A DNA stretch of 63,486 nt, the filler included, from Polymyxa betae A26-41 (Eukaryota > Protista > Endomyxa: Phytomyxea), in NCBI GenBank assembly GCA_003693705.1. It is 6 parts of 6 records of this genome, joined end to end, with 100 filler letters (N's around TTAATTAATTAA, not from the genome) between each part and the next. Parts side by side here need not be neighbours in the genome. Positions count along the whole stretch, not along the records: positions 25,105 to 32,612 come from RBZT01000245.1; 5 more parts are not named here. One strand, written 5' to 3'. Position numbers and translations under genes: made by a program. Below are positions 1,670 through 32,612 of the stretch, one piece after another; positions within the stretch are counted from its first letter, which is position 1, and each line of letters opens with the position of its first letter. The notes beneath the pieces are model-generated. The model was not told the DNA's origin and ran no database searches. It saw nothing but the letters and a program-made list of their open reading frames with translations.

Positions 1670-3431
1670 GCAGCGGGTTGCACCGCGGACTGCGTCGTGC
1701 CCCCTTAACCGACCCGCTAAGTCACTGTTGGTGGTTACGGTATTAGCAACGTTACAAGTTACAACATGGCGTAACGTTATGCAGTGTGTATGGCTTTGGC
1801 ACTGGCTGGAATATCAGAGCACTGGATGATCATTGGCAACGATAAAAATTGATCCCTCATGGCCCTTATAGGTAATGAAGAGAACGATAACTGTTTAAGA
1901 AAACTTTTTGCCATCAGCGTTACCACCAGTTTCGAACTTGGCAATTTCATGATAGCGATGGTACATACTCAATTGGGAGAATGTGCTATCGATGAGTAGC
2001 CAATCAGATTACTGTCAAAATGTTGAAAACTTAAAAGAAAAAGTCCGATATAGTACAGGTTTCAGTAGATCAGGGTCTTCGCCAGTTTGAAAATCGGCAA
2101 CTCGTAGTTTTTTCAGTTTGAGAATCTACTTTGCTTCTTCCGCCGACAGAAAATCGATCGAAACACTCCGGCCACTCTAGGGCTTCTTTTGCCATCGTTC
2201 CTTCTTCTGCTAGCTGAATCAGATCACAGTTGTCGTTTTAACAGGTCTCATATTTCCAGACCTAACCCTAACCCTATTGCAAGAAGAATTAAGTCTAATT
2301 TTCTGTATGGTTTGCTTCAAAGCGGATATCTTTGGTGTTAAGTCTCCGGTGATGTTTATTGTGTGATTGGGATATGGGTTGTATTCTCATTGTTCTAGAG
2401 CGGTGTCGATGTCGTACCCGAAATCGCGTCTGCCCACAACTGTTCATTCCACGACTATTCCGTTTCAACGACCGGATCGGCAGCCGAAGGCTCAACAAAA
2501 AAATAGACTTTTTTATTTTTTAGACATTTTTTTATATTTTCTAAGTTGTCCTTAAAATTCTTACGAAATCTTCTCAGCCAAAACTATGGCGGCCGGGAAC
2601 GGCGTCAACGCGCCGGCGGGAGGACAGGCGGGCCCGAAAGTCGGGTCGTATTGTACGCTAAGAATAGACCGATTCAGTAGCTTCAAATCAAAACTTAATT
2701 CGAGCAGTAGCCCATTTCAGTAATTCCCCGATGTTGGCCGGCCGCAACACCTGGCATCAAAAACATTCATCCGCTTTTGAAAATACTATGTCATTCGTTT
2801 CAGCTTGGGCAGCATTCAGCCGAGTATCGGATCCTGAACGTGGCGGCCAGCACATTTTGAATCGTTAAGTCTTTTGTCACAAATGGTCCAGAATCTAGGC
2901 TTACGTGGGGTTTCTATCGAATCTCTGCAGTGTCAAGCCTGGAATCTCATACTGTGGCAATCTGATCAGCAGAGGCGATTATCTAGATTGTGTTTTGATT
3001 CGTCTCAGGAGAATTGCAGGCCACCAAAAATCAAATGAATAGCAGGTTGATGATTGCCGGAGCGTGACAGCTAATCAAAAAGGCGAAACCGCTTGGAAGT
3101 GAAACACAAGTTTTCAGAGTGGGACGAGGTTTTGGCGCAGATTGCGCAGGATTAAACCGTACTCTAAAATAATCACAAAAAAATCGATGGCGCAGAAGAA
3201 TAATCAAACATCGATTTTTAGTTACGCAATATTCCGGCCTCAAGTGGCGCAGAGAAAAATGTCGATTTCTAGAAGCGCAGTATTTCTGCCGCCTGTTTCG
3301 CAGTTCTGACCTAACTCTGGGGCTGCGCACTCGTGTCTATTCGTTACGACTGGTAAGGTTGGCCTCCCTTTTTGTCCCTTCTCTGGGGCTTAATCGTCGC
3401 CGTTGTCGAGGCGATCTTGCTGAACATCATC

Positions 3432-5891
3432 ATGGCCGAATCTGACCACGGTTCGCCTCCTTGGGGCCTTAAACCTGCTATGGTTATCGACAACGGCACC
3501 GGGTATGCTGGCCGCTGATGCTTCTCCCACTTCTGACTGTGTTTGGCTAGGTATACTAAGATGGGTTTCGCTGGCAATGCCGAACCTCAGTTCATTGTGC
3601 CTACCTTGATTGCAAACGCTGTGCCTGGCCAAGGCAAAAAAGTACTATTCTATATTTCGTTTTTATTGATTGTTTTTTTTGCTTCATCCATTTCGTTTTG
3701 CCATAAGGCTAGCCTCTCAAAATCTACCTTTCTGTGCGTGTTTTTGCAGTATTGATTTTCTGATTCTCAGATAGGTCAGCGACTTACAAGATCTGGATTT
3801 CGTCATCGGCAAAGAAGCTTCTGATGTGCGTCGTAATTACGCTGTTGATTACCCGATCCGACACGGCATCGTCGATAACTGGGACAATATGGAGAAGTTC
3901 TGGCAACGCTGCATTTTTCAATACTTACGTGCCGATCCTGAAGAGCATTATGGTATTGCTTTAATCGTTTTTCCGTTTTTGTTTTCCTTTATTTTTACTT
4001 TTACATCTGGCTCTTTAAACTTGTATGTTTTGTGATCTATCATGACTCTTCCGTTTGTGTTTCCTTGATTTTTACTTTTACATCTGGCTCTGTTAACTTG
4101 TATTTTTTGTGAGCTGTCACGATTCAGTCTCAAATTTTATTGTATTGTTTGGCCTGTTGCCAAACATTTTGCATAATGTTTGCAAATTCGTCTATATCCA
4201 TTGCGTTTTATATCATGGCTGTTATGTTTTCAGCGAAAACTGATGGAACTCTTTTCTGTAGTTCTGCTGACTGAGCCGCCCATGAATACTCCCGAAAATC
4301 GTGAACTGACAGCTGAGATTATGTTCGAGACCTTCAACGTCCCTGGAATGTATATCGGCGTTCAAGCTGTTTTGGCTTTGATAGCATCATGGGCTTCAGA
4401 GGCGGCTACGAGGACATTGACTGGAACCGTTATCGACTCGGGTGATGGTGTCACCCACGTCATTCCAGTCGTCGAGGGCTACGTTATTGGCAGCTGCATC
4501 AAGCACATTCCACTGGCTGGTAGTGATATTACAAAGTAAGTTTCTTCCGCTTTTATGGAAGACTCTTTATTTTATGGAAGACTCTTTAGCTTTTTTTGGA
4601 AGACTCTTTAGCTTTTATGGAAGACTCTTTTGCTTTCCTTGAAGACTCGTTAGCTTTTATGGAAGACTCTTTAGCTTTTTTGGAAGACTCTTTTGCTTTT
4701 ATTGAAGACTCTTTAGCTTTTATGGAAGACTCTTTGGTTTTATGGAAGACTCTTTTGCTTTATGGATTATATTCATGCTTGCTTGTAATGCTTGATTATT
4801 CCGCCTTCATCGGTTAGGTTTAACAGGGTTGCTTGTATTCTATGCCTGTTAAATTGTTAATGTTTATCGGTTAGGTTTAGGAACTCTTTCGTTATTTTTG
4901 CTTTACCGATCTCATTTTCGTTTGGTACCTGGCGTTTATTGTTTATCTAGGTTCATCCAGCAGCAACTTCGTGAGCGTAACGAGAAGCTGCCTCCCGAAG
5001 ACTCACAGGTGATTGCAAGACGAATCAAGGAGAAGTACTGCTACGTCTGTCCCGATATCGTCAAAGAATTCAGCAAGTACGATGCCGACCCTGACAAATT
5101 TTTCAAAACTGAGGGCGTTGTAAGTGTGCTTTATTCTTTGCTCTACCTTTTTTTAACTCTTAAACTAGTCTAATGCTAAAGGCTTACCATCCGCAGACAT
5201 CGATGTGGGCTACGAGCGGTTCTTGGGCCCAGAAATTTTCTTTAGCCCCGAGATTTTTTCGTCTGAATTCACGACCCCATTGCCCCAAATAGTCGACGAA
5301 ACCATTCAAGCGTGCCCGATCGATACTCGACGTCCGTTGTATAAGAACATCGTTCTTTCGGGAGGTTCCACTATGTTCAAAGATTTCGGTCGCCGCATCC
5401 AACGTGACGTCAAGCGCCTAAGTGATGCCCGGTTTGCCTTGGTATGTCATTATATCTCTTTCTGGTGTTTGCTGATCACGTCTTCGTGCTTTATTATGTC
5501 ATTTATTTTTGCATTTGTTTCTTCATTTGGACTTGAATCTTTTTGATCCTATATCCTATATCTCTTTCTGATGTTAGCTGATCACTTCTTCGTGCTTTAT
5601 TATGTCTTGTTTCTTCATTGGGACTTGATTCTTTTTGATTCTATTAATTTTTGTTATTGTCAGCTTTAACTAAGACTTTTACAGGCTGAGGTGGCCGCTG
5701 GTGGCCAGATTCAGTTAAACCGAACGGAGGTCAACGTTGTCACGCATCGAATGCAGCGGTTTGCTGTTTGGTTTGGCGGCAGTATGCTGGCTTCAATGCC
5801 GCAATTTTACAAGAACAGCTATTCCAAGAAAGACTATGAAGAAGTCGGCCCTCGTATCGCTCGTCATAACGCTGTCTTTTCTTTAGTGTAG
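3432..5891 (+). CDS. ARP3: actin-related protein 3, multi-exon
   Basis: Spliced exons give [75 protein letters not shown] and [14 protein letters not shown]; GT-AG introns. Confidence 0.95.
4549..4766. repeat. intronic minisatellite, about 10 x 21 bp (TTTTATGGAAGACTCTTTAGC)
   Basis: Tandem units visible immediately after the GTAAGT donor in an ARP3 intron. Confidence 0.95.
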
Positions 5892-9554: not shown

Positions 9555-11514
9555 GATTAACGCTACAATATTCCGGTCATAATATGAAATTGCGAGCTGC
9601 AATTGATAGAAGTGAAGACAGCTACAATCTCACCCACTATGATTGAATCCACCATCTGCTTTGTCCGACCTGATACTTTTTTGCCAATAGAAAGAACTTC
9701 ATGTTCTTAACCATTATTTTCACTGCTATCTTCTCTCTTCAAAATCCTCGCAGCCTAACCACTTCAAAGCTGCCGTCGTTGTCGATCATGATGTATTTGG
9801 CGGTACAAGTTCTAAGCGGTCAGAAAATCAATTTGCGGCTGGGGCCCGCAAAGTAGGTATCGGAATATCGCGATGTTTTGCAAATGTGACACTTCCTACC
9901 TTTAGTTACATACCTCTATCACAAGAGATTGCAATATGGACAGATGGCTGCCTCACCTGATGCCGCATAGACAGTGAGACTAAGCGTGGCGACAACCGCA
10001 ATCGTCCAAATCAAAGATCCCGACCATCACTCTAAAAACGACATTTTACGTTCGATAGCCAACAATCAACGGCGCCTTCGTTATCTTTTCTCAATCGAGT
10101 ACCATTCGATTTTTTTAACGGATCTGCAAAAACGTTGGTGGCTTTAGTATTTGGCAAGACTTGTGATATACCGGTAGTATAGCATTGCCTGCTTTATAGA
10201 TTTCATAACGACTATGCCGATATATAGTGCATCCTAATAACACAATCTGTGATTTGAGAGTGGGTGTAGTCTGAAACCGTACCTGATATAGCTGGACGGA
10301 ATTCTGGCGGCCTGCGTCCCAGCCAGGCTGCGTGGCGCTCACTCAAGTGGGGCAGTACGTCCTGGATGGCAGCGAGAAACCAAGCGAACCATCATGGCTG
10401 GGTTTCCGAAGGAGTCCACCCGCGGTTTATCGAAGGTAAGACCCACAACCAGCCCCCGCCGCCCCAAATCGCAATTTATCGGACCTTGAACAGTCAGCCA
10501 TCGGTGACGGACTGTCAGGCGCAGACTTCTCTCTGTCGAGCTCGCCTTATAAACAAGGACAAAAATCACGACCATCCTAACAAATTTTCACAGGATTCAC
10601 TACAGAGCACAATTAGCATGGTTAGCAAAGCCCAATTGGCTATCCGTACGCCTACCTCTAGTTTGATCTGGAATTCGCATTCCTCGCCTTTAGTCCCGAT
10701 CGTCAAGCCCGGGGAGGCCTTGAACAGGGCGGGCCGCATTGTGAGGCTCACAAACAGGACAGTAACACACAGCTAAACAACATAACCCGAACACAAGCAC
10801 AATGGCGAGAGGGAGAAATCTGACAGGACCTGCAGATTATTCTCTCAAATAGCATACATCACAGATGTCAGATGTGAAACGATAATTTTCATTGATCAAG
10901 CGACTACAATCAAGCCATTCCTGATTAGTGGTCCCATCATTCCTCGACTTTCAAGTAGGAGCTGCAACAGTTGAGGGAATACTCGACCAAATGTCGGTGC
11001 ATTTGCTCAGAGAAATCCAGCGGCAATCGTAATACTACTTAAAATTAGTGTAAAACAAAAAGGGCATCACAGTCGGACAGCTTAACTCGGTAATCAGTGG
11101 GAATTCGATACGAAAACTACGTTACGCAAAAGTTTGAATATTTGCGTGCAAACCTCGAAAATCGTGCAATAATTCGAGATTTATTTCCGTACCTATTCAA
11201 GATCGCTTAGAATTCGAAGTGGGATATTTTGATGTTGCCGATAAAGCTTCACAGCATACCCAATCGGTTTCAATGTTAAGGAGTTGCCTTCAGGACCATG
11301 TACAAAATATGCGTCTGTGAAACGATATGATTTCAGTGAAAATTTCCGACCTTCGCAACAGATATGCTTTCAAGAGCCAATGGAACAATTTAAGCCAAGA
11401 GATTGAAACCGAAATTGTAGTGACTGCGTGCAAAAGCATTGGCTGCACCCCAAAACATTTATTAAAAGGTCTTTTAATATGATCTTTTTGAAATCGATTT
11501 TCAAAAATATCACG

Positions 11515-12132
11515 TTATAAGACCCTATATCGTGATATTTTTGGAAACTTTTTCCATAATATCATCGTGGGATGGGTGGTATTCAACTCCGGGGAGATTA
11601 ATTTTATTTCATCTTTCAATTCATTTATTAAAATCATAAAAAACGGAACATATTTTAAATATTTAAGTCCATCAAATTCTTCACCTCCTCCTTGCCTTGT
11701 ATGGATTAAATTATATTCTTCAATCCCGGGTATTTCTTCCAATTCTTCGATAACTACTCCAATTTCATCATAAGTTTTATTTTTATATGTTTTAGTATAT
11801 TTCTTAAAATCAATTTTATCTAAAATTTTAGGTATATTCTCAATTTCATTCAATTTTTTAATATTAGTTTTTAATCGTCTTGAACTTGGGGTTAAAGGTA
11901 TACCGGAATCAAAATACGTTCCCGCGCAGTTAACATCTGATTGAAACCAAATCTGGTTGTCAGAACCTATATGATAAACCTCATTATTTGCCCCATCAAA
12001 TAAATAATGCTCGTCATCTGTCTGCGTTTCATATCTGTATGTATAACTTCCACTAGTAATTTTAAAACTACAATTTCCAGAATGAGTTAATTAAAAAGCA
12101 TCAGAACCTCTCATAATATTACTACCAGAAAC
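11515..12132 (-). pseudogene. virus-like tail-fibre protein C-terminus with peptidase S74 (intramolecular chaperone) domain; one in-frame stop; cut by contig end
   Basis: PSSRRLKTNIKKL...ILDKIDFKKY...IGVVIEELEEIP...LKYVPFFMILINELKDEI fits the S(D/S)xRLKxNI chaperone pattern; strongly AT-rich and intronless. Confidence 0.7.
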
Positions 12133-12232
12133 NNNNNNNNNNNNNNNNNNNNNNNNNNNNNNNNNNNNNNNNNNNNTTAATTAATTAANNNNNNNNNNNN
12201 NNNNNNNNNNNNNNNNNNNNNNNNNNNNNNNN
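12133..12232. other. artificial contig linker (N-TTAATTAATTAA-N)
   Basis: Six-frame stop spacer flanked by Ns. Confidence 0.99.
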
Positions 12233-12740
12233 AAATGTCGCAAAAGTAGGTCGGGAAATTGAAAAAAACAGAAACTTTTTTATTTTGGAATTTTTTTTTT
12301 GGAAATAAAAAAACATATGGAAAAATTTTTTTTTGATTTTTTTGAGTTTTGCGACCATACAAAAAGGGTATTTTGCGAGTTATTTTTACCATTTTTGCGA
12401 GTTTTGAAGTTTTTTTGCGAGTTCTAAAAATATAAAAATTGATTATCAAAAACATATAGATTAATTACTGTTTATGTTTTTTTATATAATTTAAAATCAA
12501 TTTAAAATATACAACTGGTTAGGTGCGGATGATTTGGATTAATATATGGGTTTAATCCCGATTTTTTTGAAAAGTTTTTTTAAAAAATCATTTTTTTTTA
12601 CACCATAGACAAGGAGACACGAATACCATAATCAAAAAATGACAAAAGATTTTTCAAAAATGACAAACCCTAATCCAAAAATGACACATTAAAAGACCTT
12701 TTAATACTTTGATTATGGTATTGGTGTCTCCTTGTCTGTA
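12233..12740. repeat. AT-rich non-coding island with TTTTGCGAG and AAAAATGACA repeats and a 30-bp inverted repeat (12607-12636 / 12708-12737)
   Basis: Direct inspection; shares the ATTAAAAGACCTTTTAAT hairpin with 11461 and 32843. Confidence 0.7.
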
Positions 12741-13205
12741 GAGAGTCAACAACCTGTCATCCAGCTCTATTATCACTAAGCTACGTCCTCAATATGGGTA
12801 TCAGGATTCACTGCTGGGCAACGCGATCTTTCTTAGCTTAAAAATGCTTCGAAACACCGGTTTCTGAATACATACTTGAGTTTGAGATTCTGTGACGGCG
12901 AACGGAACTCAAACTAAAACTAAAAAAATAGAGAACTTTCGGAACGCCTTTTAATCGTCTAATTTCAACTTCGCAACCGGTCACAGGAGCTCCAGAGAAT
13001 ATCGACAGGTTGCGCCGAAGTTGGAGTTCGAAGGCTTGTCCAGTTTGAGCGGCCTTTTGCTAGACGCCGATCTTTCTTCCAACTTCGCTCGTCACACTGT
13101 CAATGAGAATATATTCAGCAGGACGAGAGCTAAAGGGTTTCCGCTGTATATAATACATGCATTATTAAATTAAACAGCAACGCAACAACGATTAAAGTTC
13201 AAATC

Positions 13206-25104: not shown

Positions 25105-25281
25105 GCGGCCTCTGGCGCGGCCTCTTTCTCCAAAATAAAATTGAGACAAGTTGTCGGTTTAAGACTGCCCGCACTGTAGAGGAAAAAAAGCGTGAGTGAG
25201 TCGCATACATAAAAGGTCCCATAATCGTTTCATTTAGTAAGTTCATTATAGCAGGTGCGTGTTATGCCCTGGATCAGACTC

Positions 25282-25476
25282 ATACTTACCTTGAAGGTGC
25301 TCAGTAGTTCAGCTACTTGATGGTCGATCATTAAGGACCGTGGGCTATAGTGGAGCGGCCCAACTGCACGCGTTGTGATATACGCAGGGTGTCTGTGAAG
25401 CTATATGGCTTCAGCACAAGCTGGGGTCGACTTCATAATTTATGAGTTGCGGGGACCAGAGTACGCTCTATCCTCG
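25282..25476 (+). ncRNA. U1: U1 spliceosomal snRNA (divergent, about 195 nt)
   Basis: 5' ATACTTACCT; GAAG...CTTC closing helix; stem-loop I loop GATCATTAAG; ACTGCAC (U1A-like site); Sm site ATAATTTATG; 3' hairpin AGAG-TACG-CTCT. Confidence 0.85.
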
Positions 25477-26531
25477 GCATACATTAATCAAAACGAAATT
25501 TTTCGATCTTCTTTCCATCTGCATAGATTCTGGCAGGTTTACCGTTTATGACATGCAAGTAAGTTTTCTGTATGACAAAACTTTGAAAATCTCCTGACAC
25601 GATATGCTGTTGATCTATCGTTTTTTTAATTGATAAAGGCAGCACATGATGATAGCTGTGACTGTGAAGATGGAACAGCAGAGCAAAGGAAGCTTGAATT
25701 CTTGTCTAAGAGTTTCCATGAAACGTGAAGTCCAAATCAACCAGAGTAGACTGACGGCGACGACAGCTGACAATTTAAGCAAAATAACGGCAGATTCATA
25801 AAAGACTCCCATTTGCCGTAGAGATGATTGATCGGATACAGTGGGAATCGCCAGTCTGACAATTGCAGATAATCGGGTGTAGCTTTTTATTCGATTTTCG
25901 TAAACTTGATTTAAACTAAAACAACGCAAATCGTAAATTGCCGATGGCTTTTGTAATTTTTCACAGCGTATTCTATCGACGAGATGTCAAACGCTTACCC
26001 TTTTTGTCTTTGAGACTGTGGGCAGTGGATTTCTCGATACCGGCAATACAGCTTTCATCAGTGAGAGAGAATGCACCAAAGTTGGATCGGTCCTCGACGC
26101 CCCTTGCCTCTTTTGCGCCAGAACGTCTCTGGCAGTACTCAACTGCTAGCATTTACGGTTCCTGCACGGAGTCTCACCGACGAAAACAGACACCATCGGG
26201 ATTGGCCAAAGTGCGTCCGCAAAGTTGAGCTGATTCAATCCAATACATCTCCAAACAGCTTCCAGCTGTATTGCTGCCGTCAGTTTTTCTTTTGTCGAAT
26301 ATCTTTCTGTAATCGTCTTCAGCTGTTGAGGTTTAGCGATTTACAGAATTCAGTTGCCCACTTCTTAATATCTCAGAGCCCTGATCCAAAAACTTATTGG
26401 CTTCTATCAGAGCTGTCACTTCACTGTAAGATGATATGCACTGTATTGTTGGAAACCCTAATCCAGTCAGGTGCGTGACAGCCAGACGAAACGCTGCTTC
26501 TTTTGGAAAACAAACTTGGGAAACTACTTCT

Positions 26532-27917
26532 GTCTGTCGACAGATATGCGTAGCTGCATCATCTGTCTCTCTCTCCGACTCTCCCTCTCTCTCCCTCTCT
26601 CTGGTCTATATCTGGCTCTGTCTGGTAGACGTTCGCAGACTATGCCTCTTAGACTTCAATATGACTTTATTGAAAGAACGGGCAGCGTGATCCTTTACGA
26701 TGATCTGCTGCCTCAGCGCCATTTTCCCGCATAATGTACAATTTTGCTGAGTCGCGGTCGATCTTTTTGAGCTTTGACAAATATTTATCATCTGGTTCGT
26801 TATTGGGAACGGAACCAGAACGAACAAGCTGTAGTCTTTGACAGGCTAGAGTATAGAGAGATGGTTACAGAGAACGCCATTCAGTTGGTAGAAGCGAAAC
26901 CTGTCAGTGTTGGAGTTGACAGACTCCGTGCGATCACGTGCTATCGATCGTTCCGTACTAATGGGGCATGCGACCCTAATAAACAATCGACATGATGTTA
27001 GGCCCCATCTAACGCATGCTCTCATGGCAGTAGGGCTATCTTGACGCTTCCCCGACGCTGTTACGTTACCAAGTAGAACCTCAAGTTCTAACAGTCAGTC
27101 CACATCAGCTAACAGGTTTTGAAACAGAGCAAGCAGTACATGGAAAGGATCGATTTGACTTGAAATTGCCACAGAACAAATGTGACGACAGCGGATATTG
27201 GTGCTTCGGAAAGAATCACAATTGCATGAAGCTCGGAACCGCACCAGTGGTCGATGTAACATTCCAGATAGCGATTGTCTCATCGCTCTCACCACAGACC
27301 TTGATAACGTTTGTTGATAAGACAGACGATACACCAATTTCAATTTTTCTTGACAAAATCGCTATATGCGCGCCGTTTTAGATCAGTTTAATGATTTTTC
27401 TTGATTCAGTTTCTTGCCGTCCAACAATGCCGATGAAGTGCTGAAGAAATTTGCAGCAGGCTAAATTTCCGCAGCTCGGGTTTGTCCCTTGATTCTTGAG
27501 TTTGACCCATCTGCCCGGAAACTGCCCACCGTTTTCGCAGTGAAATGTTTGGATGTATGAGCCCCGCACACTTTCTCTTTGTCAGAGTTCAGCTTCTGAA
27601 TGAAGCTCAATGCACTTGAACTACTGGCGTATTTGTTTTCGCACGACTGTAGCTGTCGTTGCAGTTGTTCAGTGATTGGATCTTCATAAATTGCAGAATT
27701 CATTTTAATGATGAACGGATCACTGAGCTGTCCAAACCCTATACAAAATTGAGATATTATGGAATAACGCGACGGCAAGCAACTGAGCGTAATTTTACGT
27801 GCACCAGCGGAGAACTGATAACGTATAATGGTTTGTGCAAAACAGGTGAGTTGTTAGCAAGATGATTCGCCGCCATTGCGAACGACAGATAGCAGGCTGC
27901 GCCATCTGTCGACAGAC
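26532..27917 (-). mobile_element. degenerate Mutator (MULE) transposon relic
   Basis: Inverted GTCTGTCGACAGAT ends. Internal fragments KVCGAHTSKHFTAKTVGSFRADGSNSRIKG (transposase C-part) and SWIM finger CNCDSFRSTNIRCRHI. Confidence 0.7.
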
Positions 27918-28520
27918 CCAACAAACTTGCGCGCTTTGGACACTGTTCAGGCTATTTCCAAGTGCAGAATCTCTCGTAATCTTGTAGCATTTCGGACGAA
28001 TTCATACTACTGTAAGTGAATTTTAAGCATCGTCTTACAAGATTGGGCTTCGCCCGATCCTTGCCCTAACCCAAAGGACCCGAATAATGACACATAAGCC
28101 AATTGGTCTAAAACAATTGACTTGGTTAGTCTGAATAGCACATCCCGCTATTTACTGAACTCAATAACACGTCTCCATTTCCAATCACAGGCTTGGACCA
28201 TTCAGTATGTCGACCCATCTTTGAGCAAGAATCCCAAATCTAGATGGATGAAACCCCAATTTTTGACCCCTGCACACTAAATTACAAGCACTTCGGTAAT
28301 TTTCTCCGAAGTTATTTCAAGTGTACAGATACGATTAGTTACCTATCAAGGCTATCATAAACTGAGCGACGCAGTTTCTGAAAATAGTTTTTTGTCTGCC
28401 AGTCTCGCACTTTTCCGCCCGAACATTTTGAAGAATCAACTTTTTCAAATGCGCGTGACGCAGCCCGCCGTCTTCTCTCACTCCAAAGGCAATATTTCTC
28501 GATTACAAAGATTGCACCCT

Positions 28521-29120
28521 ATGCTAGACGATATCATCGAATTGAATGTTGGCGGACAGCTCTTCTCCACAACCCGACAGTTAATGGAGTCATATCCGGA
28601 CTCCATGCTGGCCGCACTGGCTCGATTCCCTGGCCGTAATCATTTCATAGATCGGGACCCGAAACCCTTCGAGTATATCTTGTCTTTTATGCGCTCAGGG
28701 AACTTCCATTGGATGCCAAATAGTTCAGTTCCACTGCCCTTAATACTGCAAGAAGCTCGATACTTTATTCTTCCTCAGCTAGCTGGACAGATCGAGGCTC
28801 GAATTAAGGATGAACAACGCCCCAAGATCCAGCTGCAAGAGTTATCGATTCTCCCGCCATCTTTTGAAAGCGAATTTTTTTTCGATCTGCGACAGATATC
28901 GACGGATGGCTGGGTGTCGCCTTGCACTGAGTTCTCTAACGAATTTATACGCAGTGAGCGTTTAATGTCAGGTTTTGAGCCTTGGCTCAGAAATGCGATA
29001 TTAGCAGAAATCAACCGGATTAACATCGAGGAAGAACGCTGTGGACGCGTCTGGTTGATTCGAAGTGTTCAGCAGGAGGGCAAGGCGGTAGTTCTTCTAC
29101 TTCAACGAGAGCAAATTTGA
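28521..29120 (+). CDS. BTB/POZ (KCTD/T1-type) domain protein
   Basis: IIELNVGGQLFSTTRQLM...PDSMLA...FIDRDPKPFEYILSFMRSG...EARYFILPQL. Confidence 0.9.
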   Translation: MLDDIIELNVGGQLFSTTRQLMESYPDSMLAALARFPGRNHFIDRDPKPFEYILSFMRSGNFHWMPNSSVPLPLILQEARYFILPQLAGQIEARIKDEQRPKIQLQELSILPPSFESEFFFDLRQISTDGWVSPCTEFSNEFIRSERLMSGFEPWLRNAILAEINRINIEEERCGRVWLIRSVQQEGKAVVLLLQREQI

Positions 29121-29819
29121 GCAAATTCTCTGATGGCAGTTTATTCTTCTGACTACCATGAAGTTGAAAATGTCCCATTGAAAAATCCTTTTCATTAATC
29201 GCTCATCAAATTCAAAACGCGCTAACAATAACATCTTCTCTACTGAGAAATCGACTCCTATGGTGATCTGGGAATAGACTCGAAGCACAAAAGGACAGAT
29301 AGAGCCGGAAGTGGTATCGTCCTAGCTGTAGATTATCTGGATTAGATCCTGATAGGACGCAACCATCTGCAGATAAAAGGTCACAGCAATTACTCTCAGA
29401 GGTGTTGTATGGCCCTTCAATTAAAGATTATCAAACAGAGAATTTGAAGTCAATCTTGTATCTGCATCCCACAAATAATTGAACAAAATCAGGTCTTTCT
29501 CATCCTTTTGACTCGAATTTCACATTGAAGTTTATCACTTTTGGTGCCAATTTTGGCCCCCCCTTCGTTCGTATTCAAAAGAAATTTTCATAGTAATTTC
29601 AGATCCTGCAGCCGGTTGGCCTGAGAACTTGACGAATCCATTCCAATCTATTTATCGGCACATTCAATGTCGAATGCCAGTTTCCCGATGGCGTGGATAT
29701 TCCCGGGGTCGTCGGCCGTACCCGCCCCGGGTCCCCTGTTGGCTGGATATCACGCTCAAGGTCGAACTCCCCGAAAACGGGACCCGCCAGTGCTGCTACG
29801 GATCCGCAGCCCCAGTTCG

Positions 29820-31870
29820 ATGACGGAAGCGCGAGTCGATGGCGTCGTGCTGGTCGTCGCTGTGGTCGTCGTCATGCTGGCCCGCGCCGATTACCTGCAA
29901 CTGTTCGCGGATCCGTATCGTGCAATCGACGACACCATCGCATACAACTCCGTTTACGCAGCGCAGTCGTTGATCTCGTCGGTGGCGATCTCCGATCACG
30001 GATTCGCGCAGATCCGATCAGGAGCGGCCTCGTCCCAGCCAGTACTGTTCCGTGTCCATTCGGTCGACTCCGTGGTGAATCCTATCCCATCCGTCTACAT
30101 CACCCGAGACCTGCGTCTGGCCGTTAATATCACCACAACGTCTGGTCTGGAGACCTTCGTCGGGGCCAGTATTACCCCGGACACGTGGTTCGCGTTCGGA
30201 GTTGTGATAGTCAATGGTGGCAGTCGTCATGTCCTGCTGTATTATACGGAGATGAATTCGGATCCGAACGTATCGGAGGAGTTCCTGATGGCAGGAGATA
30301 TGTTGACTTCATCGACGGCCATGGTCACGGTCTCTCCTTTATCGATTTCGGACTCCGCCACTTTCTATCTGTCCTCGTTACGGATCTTCAATACGGACTT
30401 GACCTCGGACGATCTCGACTACGGGACCTGGGAGATACCGCCAGGTCCGTTCGCACGCGGACGGGCTCCTCGCTCGCCGCGTTCGCCTTCGAAAACTCCG
30501 ATTCGAACTGGAACATTTCCTGTCTCGGGGCCGTCATCAGTAACGTTACAAGGCGTTCTGGGGCCGCTCTATCGGCCTCTGGCCCCATCAAGCCCCCAAT
30601 CCGCAATGCGATTTCCCCGGCGCTCTCGTCGTCATACAGGCCCTGTGCGTGGGCCAGCCGTGGTGCCTGTTGCCTCTGAACCCGGAACAATATAATGAGG
30701 ATCCATGTCCAGGCAGTAAGAAATGGCTTCAGGCGTCAATGATCTGCGGACATTCAGCCACGGCGTTACCTCTGTCTTCGGCACCTTCACCCACGGCGTT
30801 ACCTCTGTCTTCGGCACCTTCAGCCAAGGCGTTGTCGCTGTCTTCAGCACCTTCAGGCTCGGCATTGCCGCCGTCTTCGGCAAAGTCGACGTTGGTGCTG
30901 ACGCCGACGCAAAAGCCGACCACCAACAAGGGGTCGTCGTCGCCCTCTATTAAGTCATCATCACCTTCGACGCCTTCGCAGAGCGCCAGGTCACAATCAT
31001 CACTATCGAAAAGTTCGGGATTTCTGTCTCTTAGTCCGTCTCCATCGGCTTTCAAAAGCGCCTTATCATCCTCAATATCCGCATCCATTTACAATGCCTG
31101 GAAAATCTCCCTTCCAATCAATCTGGGCTCTTCCAGCATGACGGATACGCAGCGGACGTTTTTGGTGTCGGCTTTCATCGCGGATATGAGCACGGAGTTG
31201 TTCTCATCACCCTCTCGTTTCACATCTGCCAACTTGATGCCAAAGACATCATCCGCATCATCGCTCTCATTCGTAGTTCTACCGAACTCCACAGACCCGG
31301 ATGCCTCCATTCTTTCGGCGTCTTTCTCACGGCAGATTCAGGACTACAACAGCCTTCTCCGATCCGGAACTTTACTGATCTATGTAGCTGCGCCTCCGGT
31401 TGCCGTAGACATCGAAGGACTTCACGCTGTTAAATGCGCTACGGATCTGTACGCCGTTAACTCATGTCAGAGCCCCGCCGCTCTTTCGTCAAGCGTTAAC
31501 GACAACACCACAAATGTAATTGCGGCCTCCGCCATTATCATTGCCGTGATTGTGGTGGGTCTGGGGTGTTGGGGTCGTAAGAGGCCGCGTCATGCTGCAA
31601 AAGCGTCGACGCTTTTAACCCAGATACATGGTGGCGTGGCGGTTGGAAACAGTGGGACTCCAGGTAGGAGAGCATATCTAGGGTTTAGGGTTTTCACGGG
31701 CTGTAGGTGGACATTCTGCGTCAGGCTCGGGGGCTGTACCATCAGGGTTTCTGCTTATGCTACCAAATACGCCCTTGCCTATGATGAGCACGCCGAACGG
31801 TGATGGAGGCGACTTTCGCTCGAATCTGATCAGCAGCAATGGAGCTGTTAGGACATGATTGGCTACAGGA
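29820..31870 (+). CDS. surface protein: signal peptide, LamG-like beta domain, galactose/rhamnose-binding (SUEL) lectin domain, Ser/Pro/Thr stalk, TM helix; frameshifted, 3' end approximate
   Basis: VVLVVAVVVVMLARA signal; NISCLGAVISNV / KAFWGRS...QCDFPGALVVIQALCVGQPWC...DPCPGSKKWLQASMIC across frame shifts; TM VIAASAIIIAVIVVGLGCW. Confidence 0.7.
30751..30882 (+). repeat. 4 x 33-bp coding tandem repeat (approx. PSATALPLSSA)
   Basis: Direct repeats CCTTCAGCCACGGCGTTACCTCTGTCTTCGGCA with variants. Confidence 0.9.
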
Positions 31871-32285
31871 TCAAGATGTAGCTTTGGGATTATTTAAAGT
31901 TGATTTGTGAATAGATAAAAGATTATTGATTAAAATCTGCTAAAAATCAATCCCACACGGCTTTGGATAATCAAACTTTCCTCTCGGTGATCTCTATAAA
32001 CATACCAAGTGGACAATTGAGTGAGGGGTTTGGCCCCGAGCAAGGGTATATGATCCCATCTCAATGGCAATTGATTGGTTTCAAATAATTCTCACAGAAT
32101 GTCTATGAATTTTGAAGTCTCATAACTTATCAAATGAATCAGAAAAAAGGTGCGCAGAACGCATGACAAGAAACTGCGTGGTTACGCCAAAATCTCTGCG
32201 CCCGCAATATGTGCTTACGTCCAAAGGTAGTACAAATCTCGATTGTAAACAGCCAGGAATGCCGAATGATCTGCTTAAAAAAGTT

Positions 32286-32358
32286 TTCCTGTACGGGGAA
32301 TTGAACCCCGGTCTCATACCTGAGAGGCAGGTATACTAAACCACTGTACTATACCGGA
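32286..32358 (-). tRNA. tRNA-Glu(CTC)-like gene, imperfect stems (possible pseudogene)
   Basis: TCCGGTA...CCTGC-CTCTCAG-GTATG-AGAC-CGGGG-TTCAATT-CCCCG-TACAGGA-A; mismatches at G4:A69 and in the anticodon stem. Confidence 0.7.
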
Positions 32359-32369
32359 CTTTTACGTTT

Positions 32370-32612
32370 TGTTAGACGGGAGAGGGTTTTGAACTGGAAT
32401 GTGTTTGAAGAAGTGTTTTATTTGTTAGAATGCAAGCGGAAGACAATGCTTCCGGTTGAATTAGCGTGAGTCAACGCTATTGATATCTCGAGATTGATCT
32501 AACAGCGCTCATATGCTAACACGCCCCTTCGCTGTTGACATCGAGAGTTTCTTTGATTGATAAAGTGGGGCTGTAATCTGGATCTCCATCTTCTGCAATT
32601 CCAATGCGCATC
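32370..32612 (-). mobile_element. 152-bp 3' LTR (32370-32521) plus PPT and ORF tail of the short-LTR retrotransposon
   Basis: Reverse complement of 9-242, with an in-frame 9-bp indel in the ORF tail. Confidence 0.88.

Follow-up and report, generated by a model that had tools for sequence, protein, structure and literature searches.

We consider it rather probable that the DNA at the right-hand end of the piece analysed here belongs to a family of LTR retrotransposons which, in the manner of Ty3, targets the start sites of Pol III genes, which is probably active, and which represents a new lineage for this behaviour. The geometry of the insertion, and the repeated use of one position independently of orientation, are shown by the sequences. 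Coordinates are those of the window, a stretch of 63,486 nucleotides, filler included, from Polymyxa betae A26-41. The piece analysed corresponds to positions 25,105-32,612 (RBZT01000245.1; GC content 47.1%), and its right edge, at 32612, cuts the element. Logan contigs of runs X1, X2, X4 and X8 were placed on 31600-32612; X1 and X2 are runs of one organism, coming from two separate studies. The features present at the junction are as follows.

32277-32282, minus strand: run of six T, 3 nt past the tRNA 3′ end by direct reading, which we take to be a standard Pol III terminator (read from 32282 to 32277).
32286-32358, minus strand: tRNA-Glu(CTC), the presumed Pol III target (ARAGORN and the Rfam tRNA model).
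32359-32369, minus strand: spacer of 11 nt, reading AAACGTAAAAG on that strand, which separates the mature tRNA 5′ end from the LTR.
32370-32521, minus strand: 3′ LTR of 152 bp, TGTTAG...CTAACA, recognised from its sequence, with borders taken from Logan contig breaks.
32533-32522, minus strand: putative polypurine tract, AGCGAAGGGGCG, abutting the inner edge of the LTR; 9 purines out of 12, a moderate match.
32522-32612, minus strand: last 91 bp of the internal region of the element, cut by the edge of the piece.

The sole tRNA gene found by ARAGORN in the piece is this tRNA-Glu, with anticodon CTC, at 32286-32358 on the minus strand. The Rfam tRNA model matched the same interval over the full model length, scoring 51.5 bits with E = 4.6e-09 (the gathering score being 29). 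The internal promoter is intact, both of its elements, the A box TAGTACAGTGG and the B box GGTTCAATTCC, being canonical when read on the minus strand. Two non-standard pairs appear in the Rfam alignment, a G.A at acceptor pair 4 and a C.U in the anticodon stem, and the base that restores the anticodon-stem pair is present in most of the paralogous contigs (A to C at 32316, 4 contigs). Judging from these pairs, and from the pairing base carried by most paralogs at 32316, the gene is a slightly decayed member of a small tRNA-Glu family. At one paralogous locus, the 3′ flank is about 90% identical over some 180 nt (32110-32285), apart from 67 nt, 32180-32246, which are absent from it (the joint connects 32179 to 32247). 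Since the flank is shared, gene and flank must have been duplicated together, before the LTR insertions took place. In at least one tRNA-Glu paralog, the 30 nt upstream are free of the LTR and consist of unrelated sequence (unaligned contig end at 32358).

Eleven nucleotides separate the tRNA-Glu 5′ end from the 3′ LTR, as had been stated in the original prediction, and ARAGORN, Rfam and the direct reading of the sequence all agree with this spacer. Its A-rich 6 nt adjoin the tRNA, while the other 5 nt (32365-32369), which read CGTTT on the plus strand at this locus, adjoin the LTR. That the 152 bp unit is the end of an LTR element, also claimed from the start, was borne out by its TG...CA ends with 6-bp inverted termini, by the purine tract, by an AATAAA placed at 32422-32417 on the minus strand, 47 nt before the LTR end, and by the contig break points described below. 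On the plus strand, neither a TGG-type primer-binding site past the LTR unit nor an AATAAA was found. The purine tract, the AATAAA and a plus strand devoid of both signals together designate the unit as the 3′ LTR of a minus-strand element, co-directional with the tRNA-Glu gene. All three minus-strand frames are open across 32522-32612, with just 30 codons each, so that this observation is uninformative. The piece ends before the 5′ LTR, the primer-binding site and the far copy of the target duplication, and contains no coding sequence of the element.

A search within the piece revealed no second LTR copy. A 35-nt segment of the element interior, 32531-32565, resembles 25605-25638 (score of 34, compared to 23.5 +/− 2.3 for 100 shuffles, with a maximum of 31). 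This match may be a relic of an older copy of the element, or be due to chance; no LTR-like sequence lies beside it, and LTR relics were otherwise not found elsewhere in the piece. Within the LTR itself, a B-box-like motif, GGTTGAATT (32453-32461), was considered and rejected, as its invariant C positions fail.

The remainder of the piece contains other features. A U1 snRNA-like gene is present on the plus strand at 25282-25477; it matches the Rfam U1 model end to end (1-166), scoring 46.5 bits with E = 2e-09, less than the gathering score of 69.5, and begins with the 5′ splice-site-pairing motif ATACTTACCT. It is probably a divergent U1 of the Polymyxa lineage. A CT-rich, microsatellite-like run made of TCTC/CCTC units occupies 26562-26600. 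The plus-strand ORF at 28392-29120 encodes a BTB_2 domain, of the potassium-channel tetramerisation type (Pfam E = 6e-14), whose best relatives, mainly unnamed metagenomic proteins, are only 40% identical. Finally, the interval 29667-31803, plus strand, is taken up by two long ORFs that overlap each other; they measure 342 and 384 aa, have a GC content of about 56-60% and are without relatives in the databases. They specify an N-terminal hydrophobic anchor, a Ser/Ala/Pro-rich region, within which at least 3 tandem repeats of 33 bp are found at 30750-30881, and a C-terminal transmembrane helix. The two probably form one gene for a lineage-specific, mucin-like surface protein, split by a frame change or an intron.

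The abundance of the LTR was examined in the public contigs, where summed contig depth, which by a caveat of the tool does not equal copy number, is used solely to call a sequence highly repeated. Single long contigs cover the unique flank, at a depth of 232 in X1 and 15 in X2. On the LTR, 154 contigs were placed for X1 and 74 for X2, with summed depths of about 50,000-68,000 and 1,700-3,600 respectively, which is about 200 fold above the flank. The adjoining 60-90 bp of the element interior are intermediate (10,000-13,000 in X1, 500-730 in X2). An LTR depth exceeding that of the interior is the pattern left by full-length copies together with a larger number of solo LTRs. One X2 contig covers 32493-32584 with no difference, at about 20 times the flank depth, meaning that the LTR and the inner sequence are repeated together, and contigs of X4 and X8 reach 381 nt further inside the element. 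In both studies, unaligned ends of Logan contigs pile up exactly at 32369/32370 and at 32521-32523, and several different continuations follow. These pile-ups, with their varied continuations, indicate that 32370 and 32521-32523 are true element borders, having many different neighbours.

A second LTR subfamily, with termini like TGTTAGACATG.../...CATGTCTAA..., was encountered directly beside copies of the 152-bp LTR. Its termini were found in unaligned contig ends at 32369, 32382 and 32519 (X4 and X8). Several related subfamilies thus seem to share insertion sites or clusters.

One X8 contig skips a 43-nt GT..AG segment, 31662-31704, which thus represents a spliceosomal intron of very small size, located in the 3′ portion of the gene for the Ser-rich membrane protein; the intron contains a telomere-like motif, TAGGGTTTAGGGTTT. 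Because its contig lacks this segment, run X8 is probably RNA-derived. In this run, the contig made of LTR plus interior has a depth of 374, compared to 4 for the neighbouring gene (about 90 times), and this high depth makes it probable that the element is transcribed. The high-copy LTR family is probably still mobile.

The distribution of the locus was followed by a sampled-word search of public runs. The X1 and X2 runs contain about 90% of the sampled words of 31900-32612. In runs under three other labels, as well as in soil and root metagenomes, the share was about 20%, which is the fraction expected from the LTR alone. The LTR was detected in this way in soil and root samples. Two probes, a 24-mer from the LTR core and a 25-mer from the LTR terminus, gave 0 matches in the metagenome, viral and prokaryote-genome contig collections.

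A second junction at the same nucleotide was found in X1. In a single contig of this run, the tRNA-side flank ending at 32369 is joined to 32521 on the opposite strand, which means that the LTR is inverted; the flank of this contig may belong to a paralog. The direct and inverted arrangements have in common just the 6-bp terminal repeat, far shorter than the 31-mer of the graph, so that the junction must exist in the reads. A junction of opposite orientation had been noted earlier at a site outside the piece, and the X1 contig corroborates this indirectly. The same contig supports the earlier view that the insertions are independent, rather than a single insertion later duplicated or a misassembly, since the same flank is found with the LTR inverted at the same nucleotide. 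Inverting an element precisely at its termini is beyond what a duplication can do, and the LTR copies resemble each other far more than their flanks do; the most economical reading is therefore that two independent insertions have hit the same nucleotide.

Two further joints, both near single copy and present in X1 and X2, consist of an LTR end, exactly 5 nt, and an LTR start. The 5 nt read AATGG in one case, and AATGA, after a variant LTR end, in the other. Re-integration at the same position with a 5-bp duplication predicts precisely such an LTR-5 nt-LTR structure, and finding the 5-nt spacing twice is not expected from random nesting. From these joints, which lie elsewhere in the genome, the target-site duplication is presumed to be 5 bp long, and positions 32365-32369 are presumed to be the duplication at this locus. 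Contig 9 of X2 follows the window from 31600 to 32369 with one difference, and its next 1743 nt do not match the window. The divergence begins precisely at the LTR edge, and the contig retains the presumed duplication before it, a structure that suggests an unoccupied, or differently occupied, allele.

The junction 32369/32370 in the orientation of the window was bridged by none of the displayed contigs. The consensus sequences of the 30-nt flanks at the LTR borders were weakly tRNA-like or ambiguous. One X4 flank contains T8 and AGTTGG in register after exactly 11 nt, and is equally readable as the end of the second LTR subfamily; in the five-contig consensus behind 32521, T8, G10 and A14 are in register, with an agreement of 0.5 only.

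The junctions seen all involve genes of the tRNA-Glu type, with spacers that resemble each other, and would therefore be compatible with an element specific for a single paralog family, or for the sequence upstream of it. An alternative to Pol III targeting is thus that the element recognises the DNA sequence upstream of tRNA-Glu paralogs and not the Pol III machinery, or else that tRNA-Glu and LTR were spread in part by segmental duplication. We regard this alternative as unlikely. Besides the common tRNA-Glu type of all known junctions, it is in keeping with the paralogous locus, given its 3′ flank of about 90% identity, and with the spacers at the direct and inverted junctions, which are at least 85% alike. 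Duplication, however, makes an inversion of the element exactly at its termini impossible. Moreover, the summed depth in X1 reaches 50,000 or more on the LTR, compared with about 1,000-2,900 on the tRNA; as the LTR is so much more abundant than tRNA-Glu-like sequence by this measure, most of its copies must lie elsewhere. Recognition of a sequence also fits poorly with the 5-nt spacers of the tandem joints, AATGG and AATGA, which differ from the CGTTT of this locus.

Less likely still is a chance adjacency, in which an ordinary, untargeted LTR family happened to lie beside a tRNA gene in a repeat-rich and badly assembled region. A single junction is directly visible in the piece, the contig breaks in the repeat, and LTR-LTR adjacency also arises in ordinary nested transposon clusters, where such neighbours are usual. 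Chance would nevertheless have to account for a second junction at the identical nucleotide with the LTR inverted, and for exact 5-nt tandems at two loci. As an illustration, under the assumption of about 400 tRNA genes, a genome of about 30 Mb (rhizarian genome scale) and a few hundred LTRs, the expected number of random insertions in the 20 bp preceding any tRNA gene is below 0.1, and that of two insertions sharing one offset is far smaller. Lastly, we consider it very improbable that the 152-bp unit is a short repeat of some other kind bounded by inverted termini, such as a miniature DNA transposon, as its small size, its 6-bp terminal inverted repeats and the lack of a second LTR and of a coding region in the piece would allow, but the TG..CA ends, the abutting purine tract and the oriented AATAAA speak against it, as do the adjoining 63-91 bp of interior, which are co-repeated and less abundant than the unit, like those of full-length elements accompanied by solo LTRs, and contigs that continue at least 381 nt further inside.

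For the reading that we prefer, a Ty3-like targeting of Pol III start sites, we infer the following mechanism. The piece would end in the 3′ end of an LTR retrotransposon, either autonomous or a short-LTR, non-autonomous derivative. By analogy with known elements, its intasome would be tethered to the Pol III pre-initiation complex, itself positioned by TFIIIC via the A and B boxes. As to the partner in this tether, the evidence favours neither TFIIIB, used by Ty3, nor TFIIIC, used by DGLT-A, and either could serve. Such a tethering would make the position of insertion independent of the local sequence. Integration would then occur through a 5-bp staggered cut, in either orientation, and at a constant place some 7 to 11 nt in front of the mature tRNA 5′ end; this point would be situated at, or just upstream of, the Pol III start site. 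The A-rich 6 nt beside the tRNA are the presumed Pol III start region, and this would imply a leader of only a few nt. Repeated hits at one tRNA gene would push the older copies outward, leaving LTRs exactly 5 nt apart. We put forward, more tentatively, a wider proposition: an active LTR family outside the ascomycete yeasts and the Dictyostelia may have independently evolved integration at the Pol III start site that is precise to a single nucleotide, independent of orientation, and productive of 5-nt-spaced LTR arrays.

By targeting Pol III genes, retrotransposons of compact genomes follow what textbooks present as a 'safe haven' strategy. To our knowledge, it has so far been documented in ascomycete yeasts and dictyostelid amoebae only, where the contacts differ (TFIIIB for Ty3, TFIIIC-Tfc4 for DGLT-A). 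If the wider proposition is true, Ty3-like targeting would have arisen independently for a third time in the Polymyxa family, and for the first time in the rhizarian supergroup. Convergence would gain a further independent example from a family that seems to be active and whose host lineage is unrelated and poorly sampled; such a family would also show, as a natural experiment, which component of the Pol III complex is used as the tether. Polymorphic tRNA-linked insertions would in addition provide strain markers for an organism that seemingly lives in soil and roots.

In either orientation, Ty3, Tj1, the Yarrowia Tyl elements, Tca8 and DGLT-A all insert upstream of tRNA genes, at distances that range from a few bp to about 30 bp (PMC5006619, PMC5911963, PMC6101501). 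The elements with such targeting are, in ascomycete yeasts, Ty3, Tj1, Tyl3/Ylt1/Tyl6 and beta/Tca8, and in dictyostelids, DGLT-A (PMC5911963, PMC5006619). Ty1 uses a broad window, and Skipper-2 inserts downstream (PMC5911963, PMC5006619); the opposition between a precise Ty3 and a broad-window Ty1, on which the original prediction relied, is thus in agreement with the literature (PMC5006619, PMC5911963). With regard to the contacts, the Ty3 integrase binds TBP/Brf1, and Tfc1 affects orientation, while the RNase H and the integrase N-terminal domain of DGLT-A bind Tfc4 (PMC6101501, PMC5006619). The trait is patchy, as a DGLT-A-like element of Protostelium does not target tRNA genes (PMC5006619).

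Ty3, of the Ty3/gypsy type in Saccharomyces cerevisiae, resembles the Polymyxa family by an LTR edge at a fixed, short distance upstream of the tRNA, in the Pol III start region. Other points of likeness are the use of both orientations, a 5-bp target duplication (inferred here), short LTRs and many solo copies. It differs by the distance itself: counted from the mature 5′ end, this is about 15-19 bp for the LTRs of Ty3, where the start site is situated about 10 bp upstream, and 11 bp here; a shorter leader would be required for the Polymyxa element. Furthermore, the Polymyxa host is not a yeast. What defines the mechanism of Ty3 is the contact between its integrase and TFIIIB.

DGLT-A, a Ty3/gypsy element of Dictyostelium and other dictyostelids, occurs in both orientations at about 13-33 bp ahead of tRNA coding regions, and is likewise hosted by a microbial eukaryote; it provides an example of convergent tRNA targeting. 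In contrast to the arrangement described here, it uses a window rather than one position, and its contact is the TFIIIC subunit Tfc4. It is thought to be inactive in D. discoideum, whereas the Polymyxa family looks polymorphic and transcribed. The hosts differ as well: with 47% GC and no close protein relatives, the present DNA is not that of a dictyostelid in the databases searched.

Tj1 of Schizosaccharomyces japonicus, Tyl3/Ylt1/Tyl6 of Yarrowia and beta/Tca8 of Candida albicans, all of the Ty3/gypsy type, share with the Polymyxa family an insertion upstream of tRNA genes, at 1-10 bp before the tRNA start site, or at 6-30 bp before the mature coding sequence. Unlike it, they are all elements of ascomycete yeasts. 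As for Ty1 of S. cerevisiae, which is of the copia type, the likeness is that the region upstream of Pol III genes is targeted, but it does so over a nucleosome-phased window of about 750 bp, via the Pol III subunit AC40, and not at a single nucleotide position.
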